From Adineta vaga (lineage: Eukaryota > Animalia > Rotifera), in NCBI GenBank assembly GCA_021613535.1, contig CP075496.1, positions 682,001 through 746,000 of the forward strand: 64,000 nt of DNA, written 5' to 3'. Shown here piece by piece: positions 7,639-63,388 of this stretch. Each line of letters starts with the position of its first letter. The first letter of the stretch is position 1. The notes beneath the pieces were generated by a model. That model saw nothing but the letters and a program-made list of their open reading frames with translations. It was not told the origin of the DNA and did not search any database. A program made the translations under genes and the position numbers.

Positions 7639-9871
7639 TAAATGATCTGTCAGAAATTTATATAAAACAAAGTTCTTTTTACCATTAACTAAACTAATAT
7701 TAAATTGGTTTTTTAATTCAGCTGTTTCTGGTGCATAAAGTGAAGTTTTAGAATTCATCCTATATGTTCTTGAAATTGTTAGATAAAGAAATATCTGAAA
7801 TAAATTGAGAAAATATTGAAATTTAATTATTACTCGAAACTATTAGTTGAAAATCATGTGAAGTGGATTTTGAAATCTTTATATGTATTAAAGAAATGAA
7901 CGATATAGAAGAAGAAAACACGTGAGTTAAGAAACAATCGAAATTTCTTGACACATACCGAGAGAAGTTTCCATAATATGTATAAGAAAGAATGTCGAGA
8001 GAAAGAAAGAAAATATGTTAGAGAAATGACGTCATCGTAAGAAAATATCGAATAAATCAAAAGTAAAGAAGAAATGAATATCGAAGTAAATATATGTTGG
8101 ACATAGGTTCGTAGCGTGAGTGAAGAAAAAAGTTTTGTTTAGTCAACTTTTAGAAAAGCAACTATAACAATAGTAAAATTATGACTTCTGTTTCGATTTT
8201 CAATTTTCACTTCTTCTTTTTTACTTCAAATGTATCAAATAGTCATCAAAACATTAGTCACTCTGTCTCAATTTCGTGTCAATTGCTAACAGATAACGAT
8301 TGAAGACTTTAAAAAAAAATTCAATACTGAATTCATTTTTGGTCAAGATTTTATTTTATTATTCTTTCAAACGAATGCATTCAAGTTCATGTTATAACTA
8401 TTCTATATTTTTTTCTTTAAACTACGAATAATTATCTCTAATTCCTGATGTTGTTTTCTAGAGAAAGTTAATTTTGTTCATATAGTTGTTTTTTTTCAAT
8501 AACATAGCAAAGATTATTATTGTTATGATTTAAAGATATCATCGTTAAACTAAAATAATTCATCATAATGAATAAGAAAATAGTTCAATCATTCAAGTTG
8601 TTTTCTCATTTACATTCTAATACGTTGATTTTTGATCGACTTTCTTGTTGATATTTGAAAAGCTTTCCATCGAAATTGTTCACGAATATTAGCTAGACAT
8701 ACGTCAAATTTTCCACGAATTGATTACAGCGATTATTTTCAACATTTAATTTCTAACATGAAGTTAGAGGCAGCTAAACAAAGCTATTGAGACGATTTAT
8801 CTATCGATCAATCAATACATAAGAATAAGAACGGTAAGATATGTTAGTAATTAAATGAAACGGATTTATCTTTCCTTAGAATAAATGAATAAAATCTTGA
8901 TAGTTTTCTTCTATACAAAGATTACTTTTAATATTCATGAAGAACTTATTGAAGCATTAGCAAAAAGTAAAACAGATTTTTACTTTAAATTGATTTTTTC
9001 TTATAGACGTTTTGAAACGATTCAAAGAATTATTCAAATATTAATATAAATGGTATTTATGCTGGACAAAAATTTTTGCGAGCAATTACACAGAAATGGA
9101 AATATTAAAACTGTACATTTACTTATTCAATATCAAGTTAATTTAGAAATTCAAATAAAGAAATATTTTTGGCAAAGAATGATTGTTTTAAGAATATAAA
9201 TGGTGATAAAACTATACATCATGCTGTGTTTAGTAATGAATCTTAAATATTAGCTTTCCTTCTAAAACCAGGTGTGTTTTTAAATTCAAAAAATGAACGT
9301 CAACAAACGGCATTACATATTAGTTAAGATTAATCCTCTTTTGAACAGTCTTTTATTTATCAATTTTAGGTGTTTGTAAAGGTTATTTAAATATTTGTAA
9401 AATTCTTTTATTAAATGGTGTTCATCATGGAATTCAAGATTGTCAAGGTGATACACCATTACATGATGCGATTTCAAATAAACATGATGAATTAATTCAT
9501 TTATTACTTGAATATAATGTTGATACTTCAATAAGAAATAAACATGGTTTTAATTCAATTCATCATTCTGCTTTACATAGTTGTTTAATGTAAGTTAAAA
9601 GATTTATTTTTCAAAAATAATTCATTTGTTCTCTTCGCTTCAGTGCACTTGAACTTATTTTTTGTAAAATTCAAATCTTTAATGGATAATTAATGAAAAG
9701 AAAGATGATGGATTTACAGCTTTACATTTAGCGACATTAAATGGTCATTTTAATATTGTAGAATTCCTTATTAATAAAGGAAATGCATCGATTAATGAAC
9801 AAAATCTTAATTTACAAACTGCTCTTCATTTAGCTGTTAATCGACAAGATTTACAAATTGTTAATGTAAGA

Positions 9872-10651
9872 ATTAAATGCGGAAACTTCGAATTCTATCC
9901 GAGAGTTATGTGTACTGCAAAAAGTGTGTGAGAACGATGAAACATTCTATAATGTCTACGGAACAAAATTACTACGAGAAATTTTTCGATGAACAAGATT
10001 TCTGATGACTTATTTTTGAATGAATTTTTGTGTTTGAATCTAGCGGGATTACAATCGTAAGTAATCTCATGAATCTATAAGGGATCTATGATAGATACAC
10101 ATATCAGTATTTTCATAATAGATCATCAATATCAATAGGTATGGAGACCAAGTTGTTCACTTTTAGTAGCCCTTCTGACTAGCTACAAAACCAAGCACTT
10201 GGAAAACTCTCTAACTGCAGGTCATCGGAGACGTATCTAGGCAATTTGGTGTTAAAATACAGTTTTTGCGAATTTTCTGACCTTTTTCAAGCATTGTTTC
10301 ATTAGAAAGCTACGATTTGACTCAAAACCAATATTAGATTCAGAATCAGCGTTAAAAACTGAGTCGATTCATATAGGTTTTAAATAATTTCGAGAAAAAT
10401 TTGTTTTTTGTTGAAAAAACCCGGTATCCCCCCCCTCAGGGATGGTCTGGTCAAAAATGACAATTTTTTCGATAACTCAGACATTTCTCGAGAGATTATT
10501 CTCATCTTCGAACTCGACTGAGATATTGATGAGACAATTATGTGCACAAATTTTCAGCTCAACCGAATGTAGTTGTGAAAAGTTATCGTGTAAACGGACG
10601 GTCGGACACACGGACCGATTATAGTAGTGTACTTACTTTTTGAGTACACTG
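9872..10651 (-). mobile_element. Full-length Helentron/DINE-1-like non-autonomous element (family A)
   Basis: On the minus strand: 5' hairpin agtgtactcaaaaagtaagtacact, then a GTCC-type microsatellite; 3' subTIR cactttttgcagtacac, a stem-loop and a T-rich end. No TSD; inserted in an A/T run of the mib intron. Confidence 0.75.
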
Positions 10652-11184
10652 AAAAAGAAGAAGGAAAGAAATTTTATGATTTTTTTATTCCCTTTTCTGA
10701 AAGAAAGGGCTATATGCTTCTTAAATAGGGTCGTTAAAATGCTTAAAGTTCGTTTGTTTGTCCAAGCCAATCAGGTGAAAGCAGCGTATAAATCGATGAA
10801 AACTTATCCCTGGTCATCGGACAACGATTTGTCATATGTAATCGAGATCGAGGAATACGAATCTTGGGTTTCTTTCCCAAAATTATTTTTCTATGAACCA
10901 TAATTAATTAATTGTTATTTCTTATTTGTCTAATCCAGTCCGATTGCAGCAATATAAAAATTCATGAAAACTTACTAATAATCATCTGTAAATGATTTAC
11001 CCAAAAGTCATCGAAGTCGAGGATTTCAAATCTGATGTTAGCTTTTCATAATTCTAATCAATTATAATAATTATTGCGAAACTGAAAATAACCTGTTATT
11101 AAGCATAAAAGAAAAAATTCTGACTATGAATTCTTTAATAAAGCTACTGGGTTCATTGAAGAAATGTTTTTTCAGTTGAAGTTG

Positions 11185-11438
11185 AGGGTGTGCGTCTGCA
11201 AGGGTGAAAAAGCGGATCCTGGATACCCAAATCCTATAAAACTTTCGGACCGCATGGCTCCCCAGAAATCCTGGCATCTCAAAAAGGCTGACTCTCGTGA
11301 ATCCTGAAAGATACTTATGGGTTATCATTGGTCATCATGAACTGTGTGATCGCAGGAACTATGAGGATCCAGGATCGGCCTTTTCCCCTTTTTTGGATGT
11401 ATGTATGTGCGTACTCTGTCAAGGAACACTCACACCCA
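11185..11438. mobile_element. Possible MITE with imperfect inverted termini
   Basis: GC-richer block; agggtgtgcg at the left vs ctcacaccc at the right; inner inverted pair cggatcctggat / atccaggatcg. Confidence 0.35.
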
Positions 11439-12615
11439 CACCTTATTCCTTCCACTTCCAGAGAAAGGAGCTTCATATGGAAAAAAAAGTTTCTGTGCGC
11501 TTTTGTGCCAGTGTCAAAGGTCAAAAACCATTTTCTTCAAGACTGTCTTAAACATCGGAAACCGAGAGTAGATTAAGGGTAGGATGATAGATAGGTGGGG
11601 TCAATATGAAGGATCAAGGGTTAAAAGTTAAAGGCTGCGCAAGATCAAAATATTGCTCTACCCTTCAGTACGAGCTAAGTACGCGATTTCGATAGATATA
11701 ATATGAGATTACAATCAGTCGGTCGTTATTTATTCATAAAATCATTAAAAGTTTAGTAATATTGAAATAGAAACTATTGATCATTCTAGAGATGATAATT
11801 CAATAAATGAACAGATAGGTAGAATCGAACCCGTAGCAGGTTTGAGAAAAATAAAGTACAGTAAAATTTGTCTAGTTTGAACACTATTGGAATCAATGAA
11901 AAACGTAGGGGAATAAGCAAATCATACAAGAACATCTTAGAGATACGATGGCATAGACATGCAACAGTCTCAGTTAACTCGGTGAGAGTCAGACTCGAAC
12001 TTAGTTTATACTTTCATGTGTTTTCTTTTGCTTTTGAGACTATTTGATACACCACCAATTGTTCATACGAAAACTTTATCTCGCACATCACGATAAGATG
12101 AACCGGCTTTGTTTTCTTTAATTCAATTCATTTTCTTGTTAAGATCTTTAAGGATAGATGTATTTGAAATAAAAATTGCCTTACGTCGAACTAATAGAAT
12201 GAAATTAGTTTATGAGGGTATGGAGCGTGAGCGTGAAAAGTAGAGACTATCGGTATCTACCCTCAAAGATTTCCTTTTCTGATTGAACTTTTGTTGAATA
12301 TCACATGCAAAAATACCCTTTCTTAAAACGAACTCTTTTGTAAAACTCAAAAAATTACTAATGAAAAATACGTATCTTGAGTGTATACTGACACTGATAA
12401 TCATACACGTCAGACGAAACTCCACTCAATACATACATTAACGCCATCTTTCTGCATAAACGAACTATTCGCTTTTGTTGAAATCGTCAGATTTCATTTT
12501 TTTTTCGAATAACAAAAATACAATACTAGCAGTAAAGCGAATTTCTTTTCATAACAAACAAAATATATTCAATAGCTTGTATTCTCAACAAACTTTTGTG
12601 GAATTTAAAGCGAAT

Positions 12616-13653
12616 ATGTATACATTTTCAACATTACCGATTGAACTCGTCTATCGAATTTTGGATCATCTGTCTGGTTTTACACTATTTTGCTCAATGC
12701 AAAATGTTTGCCAACGTTTTAATCAAATTCTGAACATTTATCATCGATATCAAGTAAGTTTGCAAAGTGCTTTACCTATTCTATCATCTGTTCAAGCACA
12801 CATGAGCCTCGCCATATATAACTTAACCAGTTTATTCAAAGAAAAACAAATTTCACAACTCCGAAGCAATTTCCATGAGTCAACCAAACACAATATTGAC
12901 TCATGCTATTAAAACAACCCTTCCTCTCGCCTGTTCTTTTCTATCTATGCTCATAGAAAATATATCTTATTAAACGTGCACACATGTGCCGCACAAGAAT
13001 AAAACTGCAGCATTAAAACACCTTTCCCGTTTCAAACAAATGTCTCTATTGCAACTCTTAAACAATGCAACAACTATCTTTAAAACCCACCGAATAAAAT
13101 AAAGTGAATTGTTTTATATTCTGACCCGACTCAAATGATCTTTCGCAAACCATAAATCTAAAAAAATCCAAAACCATTCGAAATAAACAAGTATCACTAC
13201 CTACAGTACAGTACTTACTCTACTCATCCGACGATTCCAAAATTCACTCAGTAACAATCAGACAAGCACCGATTTCTCTTTTCAATCCATGAACCCAGAT
13301 CGAAGATTTTCACACACTACCATCACACCTCTTGTATAATGCTATATCTAGTTGAAAAAACTTACTCTAAAGTTCCCATTGATTTACCCACATTCTCGAA
13401 ATGAATATTCTATACATAGACACTCACCACACTAAATCTCCGATACAATCAAATCGGCGATCAAGGAGCACAGCATATTGGTGATGCCTTGCGAATAAAC
13501 ACAGTAATGTTCATTCGCTCTTGTCCTAATTGACAGATCCATACTCTCTCTCCTCTGTAGACACTCACCGCACTAGATCTCGGGTACAATCAAATCGGGA
13601 ACCAAGAAAGAAAGTATCTCCGAAATAGTTTTGGAAATAGGTTGACGTTATAG
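12616..13653 (+). CDS. Small F-box plus two RI-type LRR protein (104 aa; exons 12616-12753, 13420-13503, 13561-13653)
   Basis: MYTFSTLPIELVYRILDHL (F-box); 84-bp phase-0 exon TLTTLNLRYNQIGDQGAQHIGDALRINT; last exon TLTALDLGYNQIGNQERKYLRNSFGNRLTL*. All junctions GT-AG. Confidence 0.75.
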
Positions 13654-15499
13654 TTTGGACTTGAGGAACATTGTTTTTTAGTGCTCTTTTCTGGAGAATG
13701 TTTTCAGAGGAAACCGATGTGGTGAGAAATGAATACACAGTGTGCTTGGAAGTCGTATTTATCGTACAATAACGTGTTTTGTTTTAAGCTCTTGATTTCC
13801 GACCGTGAGAGATGTGTTTATCATGTAAGTTGTTGATTTGTGTATGTCCGAGATAGCGAAATCCTGTGTTTGAAATGCACTATAATTTATCAGTTGAAGT
13901 TTGATGGGTATCATATGATATTTTGTGAAACTGTCTAGTGTTAATATAATGTCTTCTGAGTATTTTTCAATAGTGGAAAGGTTATGAAGAAGAAGGACGA
14001 TTGTCGATGCGTCTTATGAGTCTTTTAATGGGTCCGCTGCACTTATTACCATCGCTGGTCTATTAGGAACGACTGGGAAATTATTTCCTAAACATTCCGT
14101 TGTGCATGAAAACGTAGCAAAATATTTTTCCGAACTTTATTTTGAATATTTCTCATAATAGAGAGTTTAGTTCAAAGTCTGAGTGCCTCACAAATCGTTA
14201 CTATATTTGTAACGTTAGAGAGTTGGGGTTGACGTCAAGATAAAGTGGATGATGAGTTTGACAACTTTATTTAGTTGCTTCTTTGATTTGACGTTTGATG
14301 TCTAATGATAGAAAGATGTTTTGTATTCGTACATCTTTCAAGATAAAAAAGAAAGTTTTAGAGAAAAGAGTGTATCTCAGTCTCAACTAACTTATGTTTA
14401 GAGACACAATCTAGGATATAAATCGCATCTGGATGCAACTTCCGATATATTCGAACTTCAATGAAAGACGGCAAAATGCATTTGTAAACACAAACAGTGT
14501 TTCATGTTCACATAGTGACCCGTACTTATAGTCCCTTCCTGTTCATTATCATTCTGAGAATTACAAGAGTATGATTAATTCGCGAGTGGTAAAGTCGTTC
14601 TGTCTTGAGTTTACACATATTTCTTTTTGAATATATTGATCATCGGTGTCGATGAAACCGGCTATACTAGATCTATCGAAGCTTTTCATGCTGTGCATTC
14701 AAATAATTATCCATGATAATGAACATTTAGTTGTTGAATGTACATCCAAAATAGTTTCTTTATCTAATATGACAATTTTGTTTATTTGAGAAATCAATGT
14801 GAACTGCCTTTCTGAATTCATCGATTGTGATGAACATTCTTCTAAAATATACCATCGACGCATGTATCATGACATTTGTTTCATTGAACCAATGGCATAT
14901 TGATCACTGACTTTTAGACTATGAATATATTGATGAAGTATATAATTGTCACATTTACACTAAATGGAAATTTTCTTTCATATAATACTGATATTTTAAC
15001 AAAGATAAGATTATATCTGACATGAATTAACAAATAATATCTAACATTAGTCGAAAAGAGATAACAAAATTAATGATAAACTTTGCTTGGTTTGATTTAA
15101 TCAATTTTGATTGCAATGCTTTAAATATATTTGTAAAAAATATCGAATTCGTATAATAGTTACCTATAACCTTTGAACAATTTCACAGCATCCAAGCAAT
15201 GAGAACTCAAACGAGTGTTGCATCATAACCAAGGTAAAAATAAAGACATTATCAAACGTCATTCGAAAGACGAGCTGGTAAATTTTAAAATAATCGATTA
15301 TAAACGGATATTATCTATTGTCATAATTAGGTAAATAACTATTGAATCCATACAAAAAATTCAATAAACTCTTTTTCTTTATTTTTTAATACTTGATGTT
15401 TCCAGATAAAAACTTTCTCTTCTATCAGAAAACATATACATTTTGACCAAAAATATAGACTATATGATTGTTCGCTCTTTTTTCAATGTTTTAAATTCT

Positions 15500-16400
15500 A
15501 ATGAAAACAAATAATAATGTCGATGTCTTGCGTAGAAGAAGTTTTCTTTTCTACTTTCATGACAAAAGAAATAAAAACTTCTATATTTAGACTTACGAAA
15601 TGAGAACAAAATTAAAAATGAACACTCCGTAAATCTCATCTATATTTCTACTCATTTTGTTTCTTATTTATAGACAAGCAGTAATTTATTAGAGCAACTC
15701 TATTTTCATTTAATTATCATAAGTGTTCTAATCTTTTTTGATCATTGTCTTTGAAGGTAATATTTGTTTAAAGCATCATGTGATATATCCTTCTCATTAT
15801 CGTCTTTCGATAGATCCCTATTATTTTATTCTTCTATAGAATAATGTTGTCTATTCATTTATGTAAATCTAGGTTTATAATAGAAGACCTTCTGGAATAC
15901 GCGACTGTTTTTTTCGAAACCTATTTGATTCTCATTTGATCGTATCTTACGTTAGTATTACGAGAAACTATGTTTTATTTCAGATTCTCTGAACATTAAA
16001 AATCTATTGTGGAACACTTTCATATTATTTTCCTTCGACACAACTTGAGATCAATTGCCTCTATACTTTCCGAAATATACACAATACATTATGACTTTCT
16101 CATATAGCTCAATGGAATATTTACTCGTTGATAATTCAATATATTGTAATCAATTGATTTGTTTGTTATCGTGTGTTCCATAATTTCGTTAATGATCAGC
16201 AAATTTATTACGTCAATATGGTCCTACACAACCAAATTTATATGACATGATGTTGATTAATTTGACATATGCATCTTTTAAATTCAAATCCGAAGCAATT
16301 GATATTTTTGAACAATTTTTTATCAATCATTTTCCTTCTATGGAAATTTTATTCATCACATTAGATATTAGATGCATGAAAGCCAACTGTGAAAATAAAA
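15500..16400 (+). pseudogene. Degenerate remnant of a bdelloid F-box/LRR-like gene
   Basis: Fragment INLTYASFKFKSEAIDIFEQFFINHFPSMEILFITLDIRCMKANCE resembles this family; other frames are riddled with stops. Boundaries approximate. Confidence 0.35.
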
Positions 16401-16418
16401 AGAGTTTTTCAGAAAATT

Positions 16419-16674
16419 ATTTTCTCTTTATATCTAGGTTGATTTGTACACATATTCCAGTGTTGCAAGTGCACCTGTTTATGTTAAGCTCTCAAATAGA
16501 CCGAAAAAGTGAATTAAGCTACAGTCGAATCACGCTTTTTGCTTGCTGCCGATTGACTCAATTCAGCCCTAACCTGATTCACTTTCTCAGTCTGTTTTTG
16601 ACCTTGTAATATAAACAGACGCACTTGCAGTACTTGAATACGTGTACAAATCAACCTAGATATAAAAAGAAAAT
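16419..16674. mobile_element. Fold-back (near-palindromic) MITE
   Basis: tatatctaggttgatttgtacac (16429-) is the exact reverse complement of gtgtacaaatcaacctagatata (-16664); the arms continue with mismatches for ~100 bp. Confidence 0.8.
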
Positions 16675-18119
16675 CGTTCTACTTATTTTGTTTCTAATAT
16701 CCCACTAACCATTTCTCTGCAATATAGATCGGTCTAAATATAAAAGAAGAAAATATTTAGTTTTCTAAATAAAATATAACTCACATTTCGTTAGACTTTC
16801 GATCTGAATCTAAATGACAATAGGAAATATTTAATCTAAAATTCAAAATATCACTCAACTTTAATTAGATATGGCTATGAACCGAAATGATAACAATAAA
16901 TATTTAACATATTGTTTTGAAAATAAATCATTTTTACCCACATATCTATAGAAACCTAAGTGATAATAGAGAATGTTTTATTTCGTATTTGAAATATTAC
17001 TTACTCTTAATCAGATATCGATATGTACCTATACAACAATAAGAAATATTTCATATGATATTGAGTTTCGAAAGCTGTCCGAATAGAAAGAGGGATTGAA
17101 CAAGTCGTATTGAATATATATCTTGATAGCTTCTGAAAAACTTGAAATCTGTGGATGAAATTCGATGTAGATTCCGATAACATTCTAAGAATCTGAGTAC
17201 TGCTTAAACCAAAAACAAAAGTTGTGTGTAGCAATTAAAAGAATTTTTTTTCGCAAACTTCAATCACAAAATGTTTTTGGTAAAAAGTCACCATTTGGGT
17301 CACTTATCATCTTTCATAAGTTTCATACGGGACCCATGCTTTGGAGTTAAGTTTTCGAGTATTATAAAATCCTCAGCCCGTCCCTGTCTGCTAGTCTCAT
17401 TATATAAAGATATCTTCTATGCTCAAGAGTATACAAATACCCCTACATACTATCAGTTGATGACTGCGTGATATCTCTACATAATCGAATAGAGGAACCG
17501 CTGAAAAAGATCATTTTATTTGTACAGAATATTTTTATAAGATTGAGCTCGGTGAAATGATAAACTTTTGAATAGTTCTTTAGTTCATTTCATCAGAGTT
17601 CATGGACTTGAGCTTATCAACTCCTACCCTCTATTGTTGACATAACATATAAGTTAGTTTGAGCAATATTAGAGTCGTTCTCTGTTAACTTGTAACTGGC
17701 CTGAACATGATTTTGTTACATGTAAGTAATAAGTGCAAAACCTCCCTCAGATTTGGATGACTGAAAAATTGCTTGGAATAATCATATACTGATAGTGGAC
17801 TCCCACCATCGTCGATGCAAAACATTAAGTTGTTCAGTTCATACCTAAGATCGTTATTGACAACTTGAAATGGCCAAAGCATTTCCGTTTTTTGTTATGA
17901 CAAAACTCAAAAGAGAAAAGAAAGTTGTTAAATTGTTGTTGACTTGCATGAACAAACGAACGTATATACATTTTTTTCAGTGTGTGACTCTCTTCTTCAG
18001 TTGAGGAAACTTACGATACTCCAAGATTCACTGGGGCAGCTATATCAGGTTGCGGATTTTAGAGAAGAAACTTTACATTTAGTAACGTTGAAGGAAAAAA
18101 TCTATATGATTCAATATTA

Positions 18120-18475
18120 TCAGACCGAACCCTTTCAAACTGAGTATTTTTGGGCAGAACCCTTTGGGTTCAAAATAAATAAAACAGGACTTTTTAAAGT
18201 TCTGCAGATGTACTAACGAACCAACTGGATTCAGTTTCGTCTCACGAAGGAGTTTTCAAGGTTCAGTAGAAAAATAACTAAACCTTCTATAGTTTAAAGG
18301 ATGACTGACAGAACTCTTCATAGTTTAGAATTGTCGGACAAAACCCTTTGTAGTTCAGAATTGTTGCCCAGAACCTTTCTTGGTTTCTCATATGTCATAC
18401 AGAACTTTTTCTGGTTCTGGAGATGTTGCAGAACCCAAAAAGGTTTTGGAACACTCCTTTTTTTCTTTCAGAGAA
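18120..18475. repeat. Degenerate ~30-bp tandem repeats (cagaaccYttt...gttc), resembling CACTA/EnSpm subterminal arrays
   Basis: Units start with cagaac/caaaac at ~30-bp spacing from ~18309 to ~18450 and end in ccttttttt-ctttcagag. Confidence 0.5.
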
Positions 18476-18639
18476 TAGATAGAAACAATTAATATCATTC
18501 TATTTATCAAATTTACATATTCTTAATGTTCGACTAGTACCGATCGGTCCACAGAAAGAACATCTAAATAGAGGATTTTGTTCAGTTTTCGATGCTGTAT
18601 CTTTTAGTATATTAAACGAATAATTTCATAAAGCTCTTA

Positions 18640-18803
18640 CCCAGGTCGGCAGATCCGATAGGATCCGCAACCGACAGAATCCGAAGTAATTCCGTCACCG
18701 GGAATTTCGACAGGATATTGTCGAATCATCGGATTCCGATAGAATCCGGCATTGGATCGGATCGGATCGGATCGGATCCGAGTATCGGATTGGTCGACCT
18801 GGG
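18640..18803. mobile_element. MITE, CCCAGGTC...GACCTGGG family
   Basis: Perfect 9-bp TIR cccaggtcg/cgacctggg; flanks tta/tta; internal (ggatc)n repeat. Confidence 0.85.
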
Positions 18804-20249
18804 TTAGAGTCTAAATAAATCTCGACTTCTGGGCATATTTTTTGACAAATCTCAAAATAGTTTCGGGAGTGGTTGTCAGTAAAATTGATGTATTCTTTAT
18901 TCGTTCAACCAGGTGCGCTAAAATTTGGATCCCGAGGTTTTCAATGATGCTGAACAAAATCAAAACCTGAAATAAAGAAAAGAAATTTTAATGAGTGTTT
19001 CTTCTCTTTAAGAGAGTTTTTAAAGAATATAGACGCGTTAATCATCATTATAGTTCTTTCAGAGGGGCCAGCGAATCCTACGGATGAGCGTTACTTGTTT
19101 AGTTTTTATGTAATAGAAATGGTAATGTTAATCGAGTTGATAAAGATGGTGATACATGTTTACATGAAGCATTAAGACATCATTCATTTCAACATAAAAG
19201 AAATTGGAGAAAAAGCAAAAGTTTGTTTTAGTTTTTCTATTGAAACATTTCGATAAATTTATTTTTCTGAAATTAGATCATGAAGAAATTTATCAATTCA
19301 AATGATTATAATAATCAAAGAAGTGTTTTAATAAGTTGTACATTAGTTATGTTTGGAGCAGATTTAACAATAAGAAATCAACAAAATCAAATTCCATTTG
19401 ATCTTTGTTCAGACAATAAACATGAGATAATATTTCATCCATGTTTACATATTGTTACATGTCAATCATGTGCTAATCGAATGAAAAAATGTTTATTATG
19501 TAAACAAAAGATTCAAATAAAAACTAAAGTAAGAAAAGGATTTTTTCTCTATATTAATTAGAAATTCTTTCTTTGAGATTGAACAATGTCAAATTTGTTC
19601 GAAAAGAAAAGCATCAATTACACATAAACCATGAGGACATTTTATTGTTTTTCAAGGTAAAAATATACGAATATTATTTAATCTTTTAATAATTGTTTCG
19701 TACAGAATGTGTTGATTTCAATAAACCTTGTTCATTATGTCAAATATCAATTGAGTCAATTGTATCATTTAATGAACTTTGTATTGAAACAATTTCATCA
19801 ACTAATGATAATAACACAAATGATTCATTGACATTAACTAGTTTACAACAACAATTAGAAGAAATTCGTGAACAAGTTCATTGTCCAATTTGTATGGATC
19901 GATTAAAAGATATGATCTTTTTATGTGGACATGGTGTTTGTCAAAATTGTGGAAATCGTCTTCAAGAATATCCTATATGTCGAAAACAAATTGAAAAATC
20001 AATTATTTTATATACATAGACTAAAGAATAGATTTATATTTTAATAAAAGAAACAGTTAATTCTATGATCCTTATCACAAAAAAGATCATTTTGCTCGAA
20101 TAAAATGAAGTTTTTCAAAAACAACACAAGAGATTCTCTATACAATAGTCTCTTATTCTTGTCGTAGTTTGAAAAGCTTTTTATTCCTATTTAACATTAT
20201 TGTTATCTGATCATTAAGAACGATTTTTCAATAAGAAAATTAATTTATT

Positions 20250-62194: not shown

Positions 62195-63388
62195 CTAGTA
62201 ACGCGGCGAAATAGCCGCACACCCTCTACTGAAAGGATATAGTCAGATCGCTTATGTCACTTGGACTAAGGGCAGAATTGTATCCATTCGTAAGTCCAAT
62301 CACTTGTTAATTTGTCCAACAGTCTTCTATTCATGTTCATCTTGCTTACTTTGACCTTCTCAAACTAACGTGTAGTCGTTCGTCGGCCTCCCTTTGGTCA
62401 GCGACTCACGGCTAGCTGTTGATATACAATCAATTTTTCTATTTTAACACCTCAAAATAACTCGTTCTTAGTGGATCGGTTCCTAATCGAGCATATTGCA
62501 ACTTTATGTAACAGTATGATGTGTATTACATATTTTATTTTTCCTATTATTTTCAGGCATGGATAATCTGTTGAGTCCGTTCTTAAAGAGACTTCAAGTA
62601 CGTTCCTTCGAAAACCCATTCAAGGTACCGGAGACTCTCAAATATAGTCGTTGAAGTAACTCTAGAAATAAACGTCTAGCCGTTTCTACCGAAATATCCA
62701 TTGTACTCTCCATTTTTCATTTTCTTTACAAGCGAATGAATGAGTTGACTTTTATTCTAAACCCTCCTCAAGAGTATAAGCCCACTGGGCTTCTAATGTG
62801 TCCAGAAAATTATAAGTCTAAAGGTGGGCTTATATTTGGGCACTATTTTTTTCGCATTGCTGATTAGGTGGCTTCTATTATATCTGGAAAATTATAACAT
62901 TGATAGTGGGCTTTTATTCTGGAGGGGGATTTATGTCCAAAACCAATGACATTATATTGTATATAAGCCCCACGCACAATTAGAATGAATCAGAAAATGT
63001 TAGCTCTAGAGTACTATTTCTAACCGCTCATAATCATTTCTCAAATTCTAACAGCATAGTTGATTGCCTCGTATGCTAAGTACCAGAAAAGACGTGAGAA
63101 AATAGTCCACAAAAAACTAACGTCTGATTCAGTTTCTCCGACCGCGATTATCTTTGATCAAACTTTATTGCAAAATAATAATTATTGAATAATTAGTTAA
63201 TTAACAAATTAAATAATTAATAATTCAGCAAAACTAACATTAGATTCGCTTTTCTCGACTTCGATTACCCTTCGGTGAAGTTTCGTTCAGGACTACTCTC
63301 ATTAAATAAAATATCTAACAATGTTATGATGAACGAACGAACGAACTTTAACTCATTCTGCGTATACCCTCCTTTCAGTAGAGGGAAT
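62195..63388 (-). mobile_element. Full-length Helentron/DINE-1-like element (family B), ~1.2 kb
   Basis: 16-bp perfect subTIRs ccctctactgaaagga (62222-62237 / 63370-63385); 5' hairpin and (GTTC)n microsatellite; 3' stem-loop gcggc-tatttc-gccgc followed by gttactag. Confidence 0.8.

Follow-up and report, generated by a model that had tools for sequence, protein, structure and literature searches.

A probable Helitron2-type transposon family carrying an F-box/leucine-rich repeat gene in Adineta vaga, a rotifer of the bdelloid group

Helitron-like elements are known for carrying decaying gene fragments, and their non-autonomous, Helentron-type members for spreading non-coding tandem repeats. Here, we analyse a 64,000-nucleotide stretch of Adineta vaga DNA (contig CP075496.1, positions 682,001–746,000; hereafter the window), in which an 8.4-kb block at positions 10687–19097 encloses a gene coding for an F-box and leucine-rich repeats (LRRs). 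A preliminary description of the window had called this block a Helentron/DINE-1-like element that had possibly captured a host gene. Taken as a whole, the evidence is best explained if the block is a non-autonomous HLE2 rolling-circle transposon (Helitron2/HINE/DINE-1-like) carrying a complete F-box/LRR gene, a reading that we consider very probable. What is new here is the identification of this 8.4-kb repeat as a bounded Helitron2-type element that has an autonomous relative, whose ends co-vary and whose history is that of a composite.

The closest described systems are the Helitron2/HLE2 elements without an endonuclease. HLE2 elements have 5' terminal and 3' subterminal inverted repeats and a 3' palindrome, and they insert beside T without duplicating the target; microsatellites and central tandem repeats are frequent, and the ends are common to autonomous and non-autonomous members (PMC4067079, PMC11417382). 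The family to which the window block belongs (the window family) is alike in many respects: asymmetric terminal inverted repeats, a 5' arm repeated before the 3' hairpin, palindromes at both ends (the 3' one weak), insertion beside T with no target duplication, an autonomous form that encodes a Rep/helicase without an apurinic/apyrimidinic (AP) endonuclease, and non-autonomous copies that outnumber the autonomous ones. It differs from them in its large size (8–11 kb), its cargo of a complete and apparently selected intron-containing gene, its CTTG 3' end, and a target that lies either between A and T or between two Ts.

HINE/DINE-1 elements of Drosophila, mite and oyster (PMC4067079, PMC7492417) share further details. 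In particular, they have subterminal inverted repeats (subTIRs) of 12–15 bp placed 2–4 nt from the 5' end and about 40–60 nt from the 3' end, and the 5' subTIR itself contains a nested inverted repeat. They also show a microsatellite at the 5' side, a stem-loop at the 3' side, a central tandem array that varies in length, and targets rich in T. However, the repeats of that array are satellite-like and do not code, whereas here each unit is predicted to be an LRR exon plus an intron, and the partners of HINE/DINE-1 elements encode an endonuclease, whereas the end-matched partner here does not. The Phytophthora proto-Helentron (PMC4067079, section 11) is comparable to a 12.7-kb A. vaga element described below, with a length of about 13–14 kb, Rep/helicase without endonuclease, a 5' TT and a 3' CTAG; it also lacks a target duplication and possibly uses a target between A and T. 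On the other hand, its description contains no such subTIRs and concerns oomycetes only.

As regards the cargo, Helitron gene capture (in maize, bats and fungi) and Pack-type transposons also place host-like coding sequence between transposon ends and multiply it. These captures are usually decaying fragments or chimeras, whereas here the whole gene is carried along with its upstream region and introns, is open in most copies and appears to be selected. Within A. vaga itself, Penelope elements have mobilised intron-containing host genes, namely one non-ribosomal peptide synthetase (NRPS) gene and one LRR gene (PMC3846280), so that in the same species a transposon has copied an intron-bearing member of an expanded family. 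Those cases involve retroelement pseudo-long terminal repeats (pLTRs), target duplications and single events, whereas the family described here is a DNA rolling-circle family with dozens of copies. We found no literature on Helitrons with F-box cargo in bdelloids.

When the 8.4-kb block was used as a query against the genome (six contigs, 100.8 Mb; the window lies on contig C4), at least 11 other loci matched it end-to-end at 91–96% identity. Eight full copies have identical first and last bases and mutually unrelated flanks, show no target-site duplication and are followed by a T after the 3' end in every case (8/8). Identical termini set in unrelated flanks mean that the ends bracket one transposing unit. 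Among the eight copies pairwise divergence is 4.2–5.7% (7,164 ungapped columns) and star-like, with private changes of 1.4–2.0% per copy. Such a pattern is typical of an amplification burst, the products of which would now be about 5% diverged. As expected for recent copies, the non-coding parts are conserved about as well as the coding exon.

The end motifs are not a product of chance, since a 21-nt pattern of the 5' hairpin has 152 matches in the genome and the 21-nt 3' end has 33, while the controls (the reversed pattern in the case of the hairpin) have none. For about 22 of these 33 3' ends there is a matching F-box exon, plus a 5' hairpin where one is listed, in the correct order and strand and over a span of 5.2–11.4 kb; the association of gene and element was followed by sequence in 12 copies and by coordinates only in the further ones. 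Nineteen of the 21 closest copies lie no more than 3 Mb from a contig end (expectation from length, about 36%). The whole unit, cargo included, has transposed to at least 22 sites, mostly near chromosome ends, and the block at 10687–19097 is one copy of an established gene-carrying family, not a capture event at this locus. The preliminary description had suggested that the element may have moved an intron-containing gene and had proposed a search for other loci with its ends and cargo; the eight full copies and some 22 elements located by coordinates are such loci and bear out the suggestion.

Clustering near chromosome ends, where ectopic recombination is frequent, would also suit a segmental duplication with dispersed copies, or a locus of a gene family whose non-coding DNA is conserved, the likeness to the ends of the compact element being incidental. 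We regard this explanation as very improbable: in the eight copies the similarity breaks off at one and the same nucleotide on either side, the end motifs also occur on short elements without the gene and on a Rep-helicase element, the 5' inverted repeat changes from subfamily to subfamily together with the 3' one, and the window copy sits inside a 51-bp intron.

That intron belongs to the second of two tandem paralogues of a mind-bomb-like gene (ankyrin repeats, RING fingers). The intron of the first paralogue is 66 bp long (1126–1191), and the same exon junctions stand 9.2 kb apart in the second, where the 8.4-kb element lies in sense orientation and a shorter, 780-bp element in the opposite one. 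It had been proposed that removing both elements rebuilds an intron of about 50 bp, so that the two ends of the block occupy one insertion site. In-silico removal of 9872–10651 and 10687–19097 does leave a GT..AG intron of ~51 bp, which aligns to 1126–1191 with zero duplicated bases. Separately, the exon after the invaded intron has a 2-bp gap at 19190–19196 relative to 1276–1290 of the first paralogue, with more differences upstream; the gap suggests that the invaded copy may be a decaying duplicate.

The element's left end reads ATTCCCTTTTCTGAAAGAAAGGG from 10687 and forms a hairpin with a 6-bp stem (CCCTTT..AAAGGG), and its right end has a weak stem-loop followed by GTTACTTG, the last base being 19097. 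In the end design of the family, the arm of the 5' hairpin recurs inverted ~30 nt short of the 3' end; the other parts are a microsatellite on the 5' side, a stem-loop on the 3' side and a terminus in ..GCGTTACTTG. The 5' arm starts at nt 4 and the 3' arm begins 44 nt before the end, as in the subTIRs of HLE2 elements (12–15 bp, at 2–4 nt and ~38–60 nt from the respective ends). Central repeats are likewise present: besides the (GTTY)n microsatellite, the family holds an array of 1–22 units of a 141-bp cassette. The features of canonical Helitrons (HLE1), i.e. a 5' TC, a hairpin followed by CTRR and an A/T target, are absent, since the family starts with (A/T)TTCCC and ends with CTTG; it also carries terminal inverted repeats, which HLE1 elements are without.

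The two ends also change together. Complementarity between 5' and 3' subTIRs is 14/16 in the window family, 15/15 in a compact 1.2-kb element elsewhere in the window and 14/15 in the autonomous element. There are three subTIR cores, TTTTC (window family), TCTAC (compact) and TCGAC (autonomous), and in each the 3' inverted copy changes to match; the hairpin stem co-varies with the subfamily as well (CCCTTT/AAAGGG versus CCCTC/GAGGG). This co-variation implies that the two ends are functionally tied. The compact element, read on its minus strand, has a 5' hairpin, (GTTC)n, a 3' inverted hairpin arm, a GC stem-loop and GCGTTACTAG, so the ends of the block do mirror those of the compact element, as described earlier: the layout of parts is the same, and the motifs are absent from the controls.

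A genome search for the Pfam family Helitron_like_N gave 24 matches, and two of these have a TCGAC-subtype hairpin ~7 kb upstream. The autonomous element of 12.7 kb lies on contig C1 at about 16,977,430–16,990,116 and has a second copy at 17.59 Mb of the same contig (82–86% identical). Similarity between the two copies starts exactly at the hairpin and stops exactly at the subTIR, stem-loop and GCGTTACTAG. The element codes for Helitron_like_N (125 bits) as well as a PIF1 helicase, with STPR repeats in one open reading frame (ORF); about 5 kb of its 5' sequence is unexplained. Neither an endonuclease nor an OTU domain was found in it, by Pfam on six of its seven ORFs of at least 150 aa or by tblastn of a true Helentron ORF against the whole element. 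A sequence search of the PDB with both Rep regions gave zero matches. The first ~25 nt and last 12 nt of the 12.7-kb element are similar to those of the window family, and its subTIR core is different.

Because this end-matched relative has Rep and PIF1 and no endonuclease, the window family fits better as a Helitron2-type HLE2 than as a strict, endonuclease-encoding Helentron. From the original label, the rolling-circle, HINE/DINE-1-like design is retained and the strict Helentron assignment is given up. The same applies to the partner that had been foreseen, an autonomous element with Rep, helicase and endonuclease that shares the subTIR: there is a Rep and PIF1 element with the same end design, but it has neither the endonuclease nor an identical subTIR. 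An intact Helentron ORF of 1860 aa with Helitron_like_N, PIF1 helicase, AP endonuclease and OTU protease does occur on contig C1 (18,042,976–18,048,555, minus strand), with relatives 80–82% identical on contigs C6 and C5. It was rejected as a partner: a window-family 5' end abuts it head-to-head, and the Helentron's own ends do not match.

Several points weigh against the assignment to HLE2 of a gene-carrying element with these boundaries. No autonomous element with exactly the ends of the window family was found, the nearest differing in subTIR core and ending in CTAG rather than CTTG, and mobilisation in trans can therefore only be inferred. The STPR domain present in one ORF of the 12.7-kb element has been reported chiefly for HLE1 (PMC11417382). 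The 3' stem-loop of the window family is weak: a palindrome lies at the correct position (8–35 nt from the end), with a stem of 4 bp in the window copy, 5 bp in the compact element and 7 bp in the autonomous one, and in the window copy it consists of the 4-bp core stem only and is no more stable than shuffled sequence (z +0.78), so that in this copy the right-end stem-loop reported earlier is at best a weak one. Among 14 ends, TTCCC is preceded by A in 9, by T in 3 and by G in 2, which leaves the 5' boundary uncertain by one base. Such variability exceeds what a base of the element should show at 5% divergence, and the target may therefore lie between A and T, as in proto-Helentrons, rather than between two Ts. 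Insertion in a T-run without target duplication, as first described, is thus upheld as far as the missing duplication in eight copies and the 3' T are concerned, while the 5' T hinges on the variable first base. There is no precise empty site, and the paralogous mind-bomb intron serves as an approximate stand-in only. In addition, the absence of stop codons from 83 distinct LRR units, against 15.5 expected under random substitution, is to be read with care, as the units are partly recent duplicates and the expectation overstates their independence and is an upper bound. Finally, no donor gene outside the element was identified among the A. vaga F-box relatives, which were compared by coordinates beyond the 12 copies. 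Host gene capture remains an inference for this reason, while the gene-carrying element of the earlier reading stands.

The exons of the cargo were searched against Pfam one by one. Exon by exon, an F-box is followed by LRRs, which is the domain order of FBXL-like receptors. In proteins of A. ricciae and A. steineri the F-box likewise runs straight into the first LRR, and a GenBank protein of A. vaga annotated as ‘leucine rich repeat containing protein’ (ADD91459.1) corresponds to the gene of one sister copy (copy B), with its LRR exons joined as predicted. Of 12 copies, 11 have an intact F-box exon, with a ratio of non-synonymous to synonymous differences per site (pN/pS) of 0.29 and variable sites distributed 2/5/11 by codon position. 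These comparisons show the predicted cargo to be a complete intron-containing gene, with its F-box under apparent purifying selection.

The LRR part behaves differently from copy to copy. The stretch 13416–13606 matches sister copies repeatedly with a period of ~141 bp, i.e. an 84-nt LRR exon plus a 57-nt intron, and the number of full cassettes per copy is 1, 1, 2, 3, 6, 7, 9, 9, 10, 11, 15 and 22. All 96 full LRR exons are open, have a fixed length of 84 nt and keep AG/GT; the cassette introns differ from the 57-nt mode in 22 of the 92 cases measured (range 55–61 nt). Variation in the LRR exon is concentrated at the first and second positions of codons 6, 8, 9, 11 and 14, which are the x positions of the motif LxxLxLxxNxI. 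In LRR proteins, these positions line the concave face. At these five codons pN is 0.34 versus a pS of 0.19 and an intron divergence of 0.086, and the other 23 codons have a pN/pS of 0.54. Amino-acid change is concentrated, then, on the predicted ligand-binding face. In the terminal exon, an additional stop lies about 15 codons further upstream in four copies, and one copy is broken.

At about 104 codons altogether, the gene of the window copy is made up of an F-box exon, which is intact, a single full LRR and the terminal exon. With its array collapsed to a single full LRR, it is probably no longer a working receptor. The exons and domains of what had been reported as an apparently intact three-exon F-box-LRR gene are indeed there, although the copy is a collapsed derivative, with one full LRR as compared to up to 22 in its sisters.

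Apart from the gene, the interior is a mosaic (Table 1). It contains three MITE-like inverted repeats (MITE, miniature inverted-repeat transposable element), in agreement with the several MITEs reported at first, and a relic inner 5' end; the MITE at 18640–18803 is 164 bp long and PIF/Harbinger-like. The remaining ORFs of the element match no Pfam family. A second F-box-like remnant that had been reported was not recovered (best tblastn E value 0.07; the F-box peptide search gave one match only in the block). Taken on their own, the MITE-like repeats, one of them with a TTA duplication, and the relic end could indicate that the outer ends belong to a short element, similar to the 1.2-kb one, to which the cargo was added later at this locus by nested transposon insertions. 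This is hardly credible, the least so of the explanations weighed here, and for the window locus it is refuted: all interior parts occur in the same order in sister copies elsewhere, so they were present in the ancestor and the nesting predates the amplification. None of the refuting conditions named in the preliminary description applies, among them a cargo bounded by terminal inverted repeats and a target-site duplication of its own and two ends from unrelated families; the MITE-like parts and the gene are common to all copies. The relic end lies ~1.2 kb from the start codon, which resembles the distance from hairpin to gene in older, divergent gene-carrying lineages (by coordinates). Most simply, 756 bp and a new outer 5' end would have been added to an older gene-carrying element, which was then amplified.

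Table 1. Features of the 8.4-kb element, its host intron and neighbouring short elements (window positions).
Feature	Position	Strand	Basis or remark
Host intron, mind-bomb paralogue 2, ~51 bp before insertion, two elements inside	9866..19102	+	In-silico deletion
780-bp non-autonomous element of another family, similar end design, same intron	9872..10651	-	Genome search
Rolling-circle element copy, 8,411 bp, probable non-autonomous HLE2 family, F-box/LRR cargo	10687..19097	+	Whole-length match to at least 11 other loci
5' terminus, hairpin; left arm is the 5' subTIR CCCTTTTCTGAAAG from nt 4	10687..10712	+	Conserved termini
(GTTY)n microsatellite, short, near 5' end	10748..10763	+	In all copies, the compact element and the autonomous element
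MITE-like inverted repeat, 30-nt arms; contains a 62-bp indel among copies	11200..11391		Inverted-repeat inspection, copy alignment
Relic inner 5' end, degenerate hairpin; homologous to first ~115 bp of 12.7-kb element	11443..11560	+	Sequence comparison
Exon 1, F-box, 46 codons, phase 0, donor CAA/GTAAGT	12616..12753	+	Pfam F-box 24.2 bits (cut-off 20.5)
Intron 1, 666 nt, conserved among copies	12754..13419	+	F-box-to-LRR junction in annotated relatives
Sole full LRR cassette: 84-nt exon (13420-13503; 28 aa, RNI-type LRR) and 57-nt intron	13420..13560	+	Pfam LRR_6 29 bits (cut-off 23.4)
Terminal exon, partial LRR, stop after ..RLTL	13561..13653	+	Stop kept in 12/12 copies
Fold-back, near-palindromic, MITE-like segment	16419..16674		Inverted self-match
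MITE, CCCAGGTCG.. terminal inverted repeats, TTA duplication 18637-18639/18804-18806	18640..18803		Also in sister copies
3' subTIR TTCTTTCAGAGGGG	19054..19067	+	14/16 complementary to 5' repeat in family consensus
3' stem-loop region and terminus ..GAGCGTTACTTG	19068..19097	+	33 genome matches, 0 in control
Compact non-autonomous relative of 1.2 kb, TCTAC subtype; its two 15-nt subTIRs are perfectly complementary	62195..63388	-	End comparison

The 780-bp element in the same host intron has a GTGTACT..AGTACAC 5' hairpin and an inverted 3' copy of it, followed by a stem-loop and a terminus in ..CCGCATTTAAT; the base flanking it is T on either side. Among the 40 of 276 candidates that were scored, about 20 members of its family are full-length (positions 2–778) at 83–88% identity. 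On contig C6 (about 13.575–13.586 Mb), 5' and 3' pieces of this family stand 9.9 kb apart on the plus strand around Rep-helicase ORFs on the minus strand; the arrangement may be either a Helentron with a reversed ORF or a case of chance neighbours.

The F-box gene has many relatives. At least 40 loci resemble its upstream region together with exon 1 and intron 1 (75–96% identity), and a search with the F-box peptide yielded at least 150 matching exons among 235 candidates, with identities between 100% and 38%. On the two contigs for which the list of hairpins is complete, the F-box exons with at least 90% identity have, in all cases but one, a hairpin on the same strand 0.5–2.9 kb upstream. 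A hairpin also lies upstream of some of the exons with 80–90% identity and, at the stringency of the pattern, of none below 80% within 5 kb. Searching a protein library with the F-box exon yielded mostly unspliced ORF calls and few annotated relatives. None of three relatives in other Adineta species was shown to lie inside an element, which means no cross-species support for the link between gene and element: one F-box/LRR locus of A. ricciae is outside an element, the other two relatives gave no clear ends, and a further look-up yielded nothing. At that A. ricciae locus (CAJNOJ010000052.1), there is a compact element of 880 bp, its ends almost identical to those of the window family, at a distance of 1.4 kb downstream of the gene and not around it. 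Judging from this element, the end type would be older than A. vaga or shared beyond it.

Such a distribution bears on whom the gene serves. Some viral F-box proteins send host factors to the proteasome. By analogy, the F-box/LRR gene could be an accessory gene of the element, kept for the element's own benefit, e.g. as an adaptor that directs host silencing or restriction factors to the proteasome, with the LRR face shaped by an arms race. Every full copy has the gene, and so do older lineages, where it follows hairpins of other subtypes; its F-box is under purifying selection among copies while the binding face shows excess non-synonymous change, and a donor locus was not found; all of this would be in keeping with an accessory role. 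Against it stand the autonomous elements, which are without the F-box/LRR gene, and the breadth of the family: at least 150 further F-box exons in the genome (38–80% identity), relatives in other Adineta species and one A. ricciae relative outside an element fit a host gene family of large size, one member of which was taken up. We therefore consider an accessory gene improbable.

Our preferred reading, a non-autonomous HLE2 transposon with a complete F-box/LRR gene as cargo, suggests the following course of events. Copies would have been mobilised in trans by the Rep-helicase of 12.7-kb autonomous elements with the same end design, and amplified in one burst that is now about 5% diverged. The cassette array would occupy the slot where such elements normally hold central tandem repeats, and would grow or shrink after insertion via unequal recombination or slippage. 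The gene products may act as substrate receptors of SCF ubiquitin ligases. As for the window copy, it would have landed in the short intron of a mind-bomb paralogue, its array having since collapsed to one full LRR.

A further step is possible, which we offer tentatively and consider rather unlikely. The transposon family may not only carry a hypervariable repertoire of F-box/LRR receptors but also drive its diversification: transposition would multiply the gene, and the tandem-repeat slot would let the cassettes expand, contract and shuffle in each copy. The outcome would be a germline-encoded recognition system in an asexual animal, either for host surveillance or for counter-defence by the element.

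In bdelloids, gene families often outnumber transposon families (PMC3846280). The elements described here put a whole intron-bearing gene into the HLE2 design, open in most copies examined and with a cassette number that differs in nearly every copy. They also add well-bounded autonomous and non-autonomous HLE2 families to a species whose Helitron-like elements are little described in the literature searched. For bdelloid biology, the family would provide a DNA-level mechanism for the expansion of one large gene family, and the idea that a transposon builds a variable receptor repertoire becomes testable.

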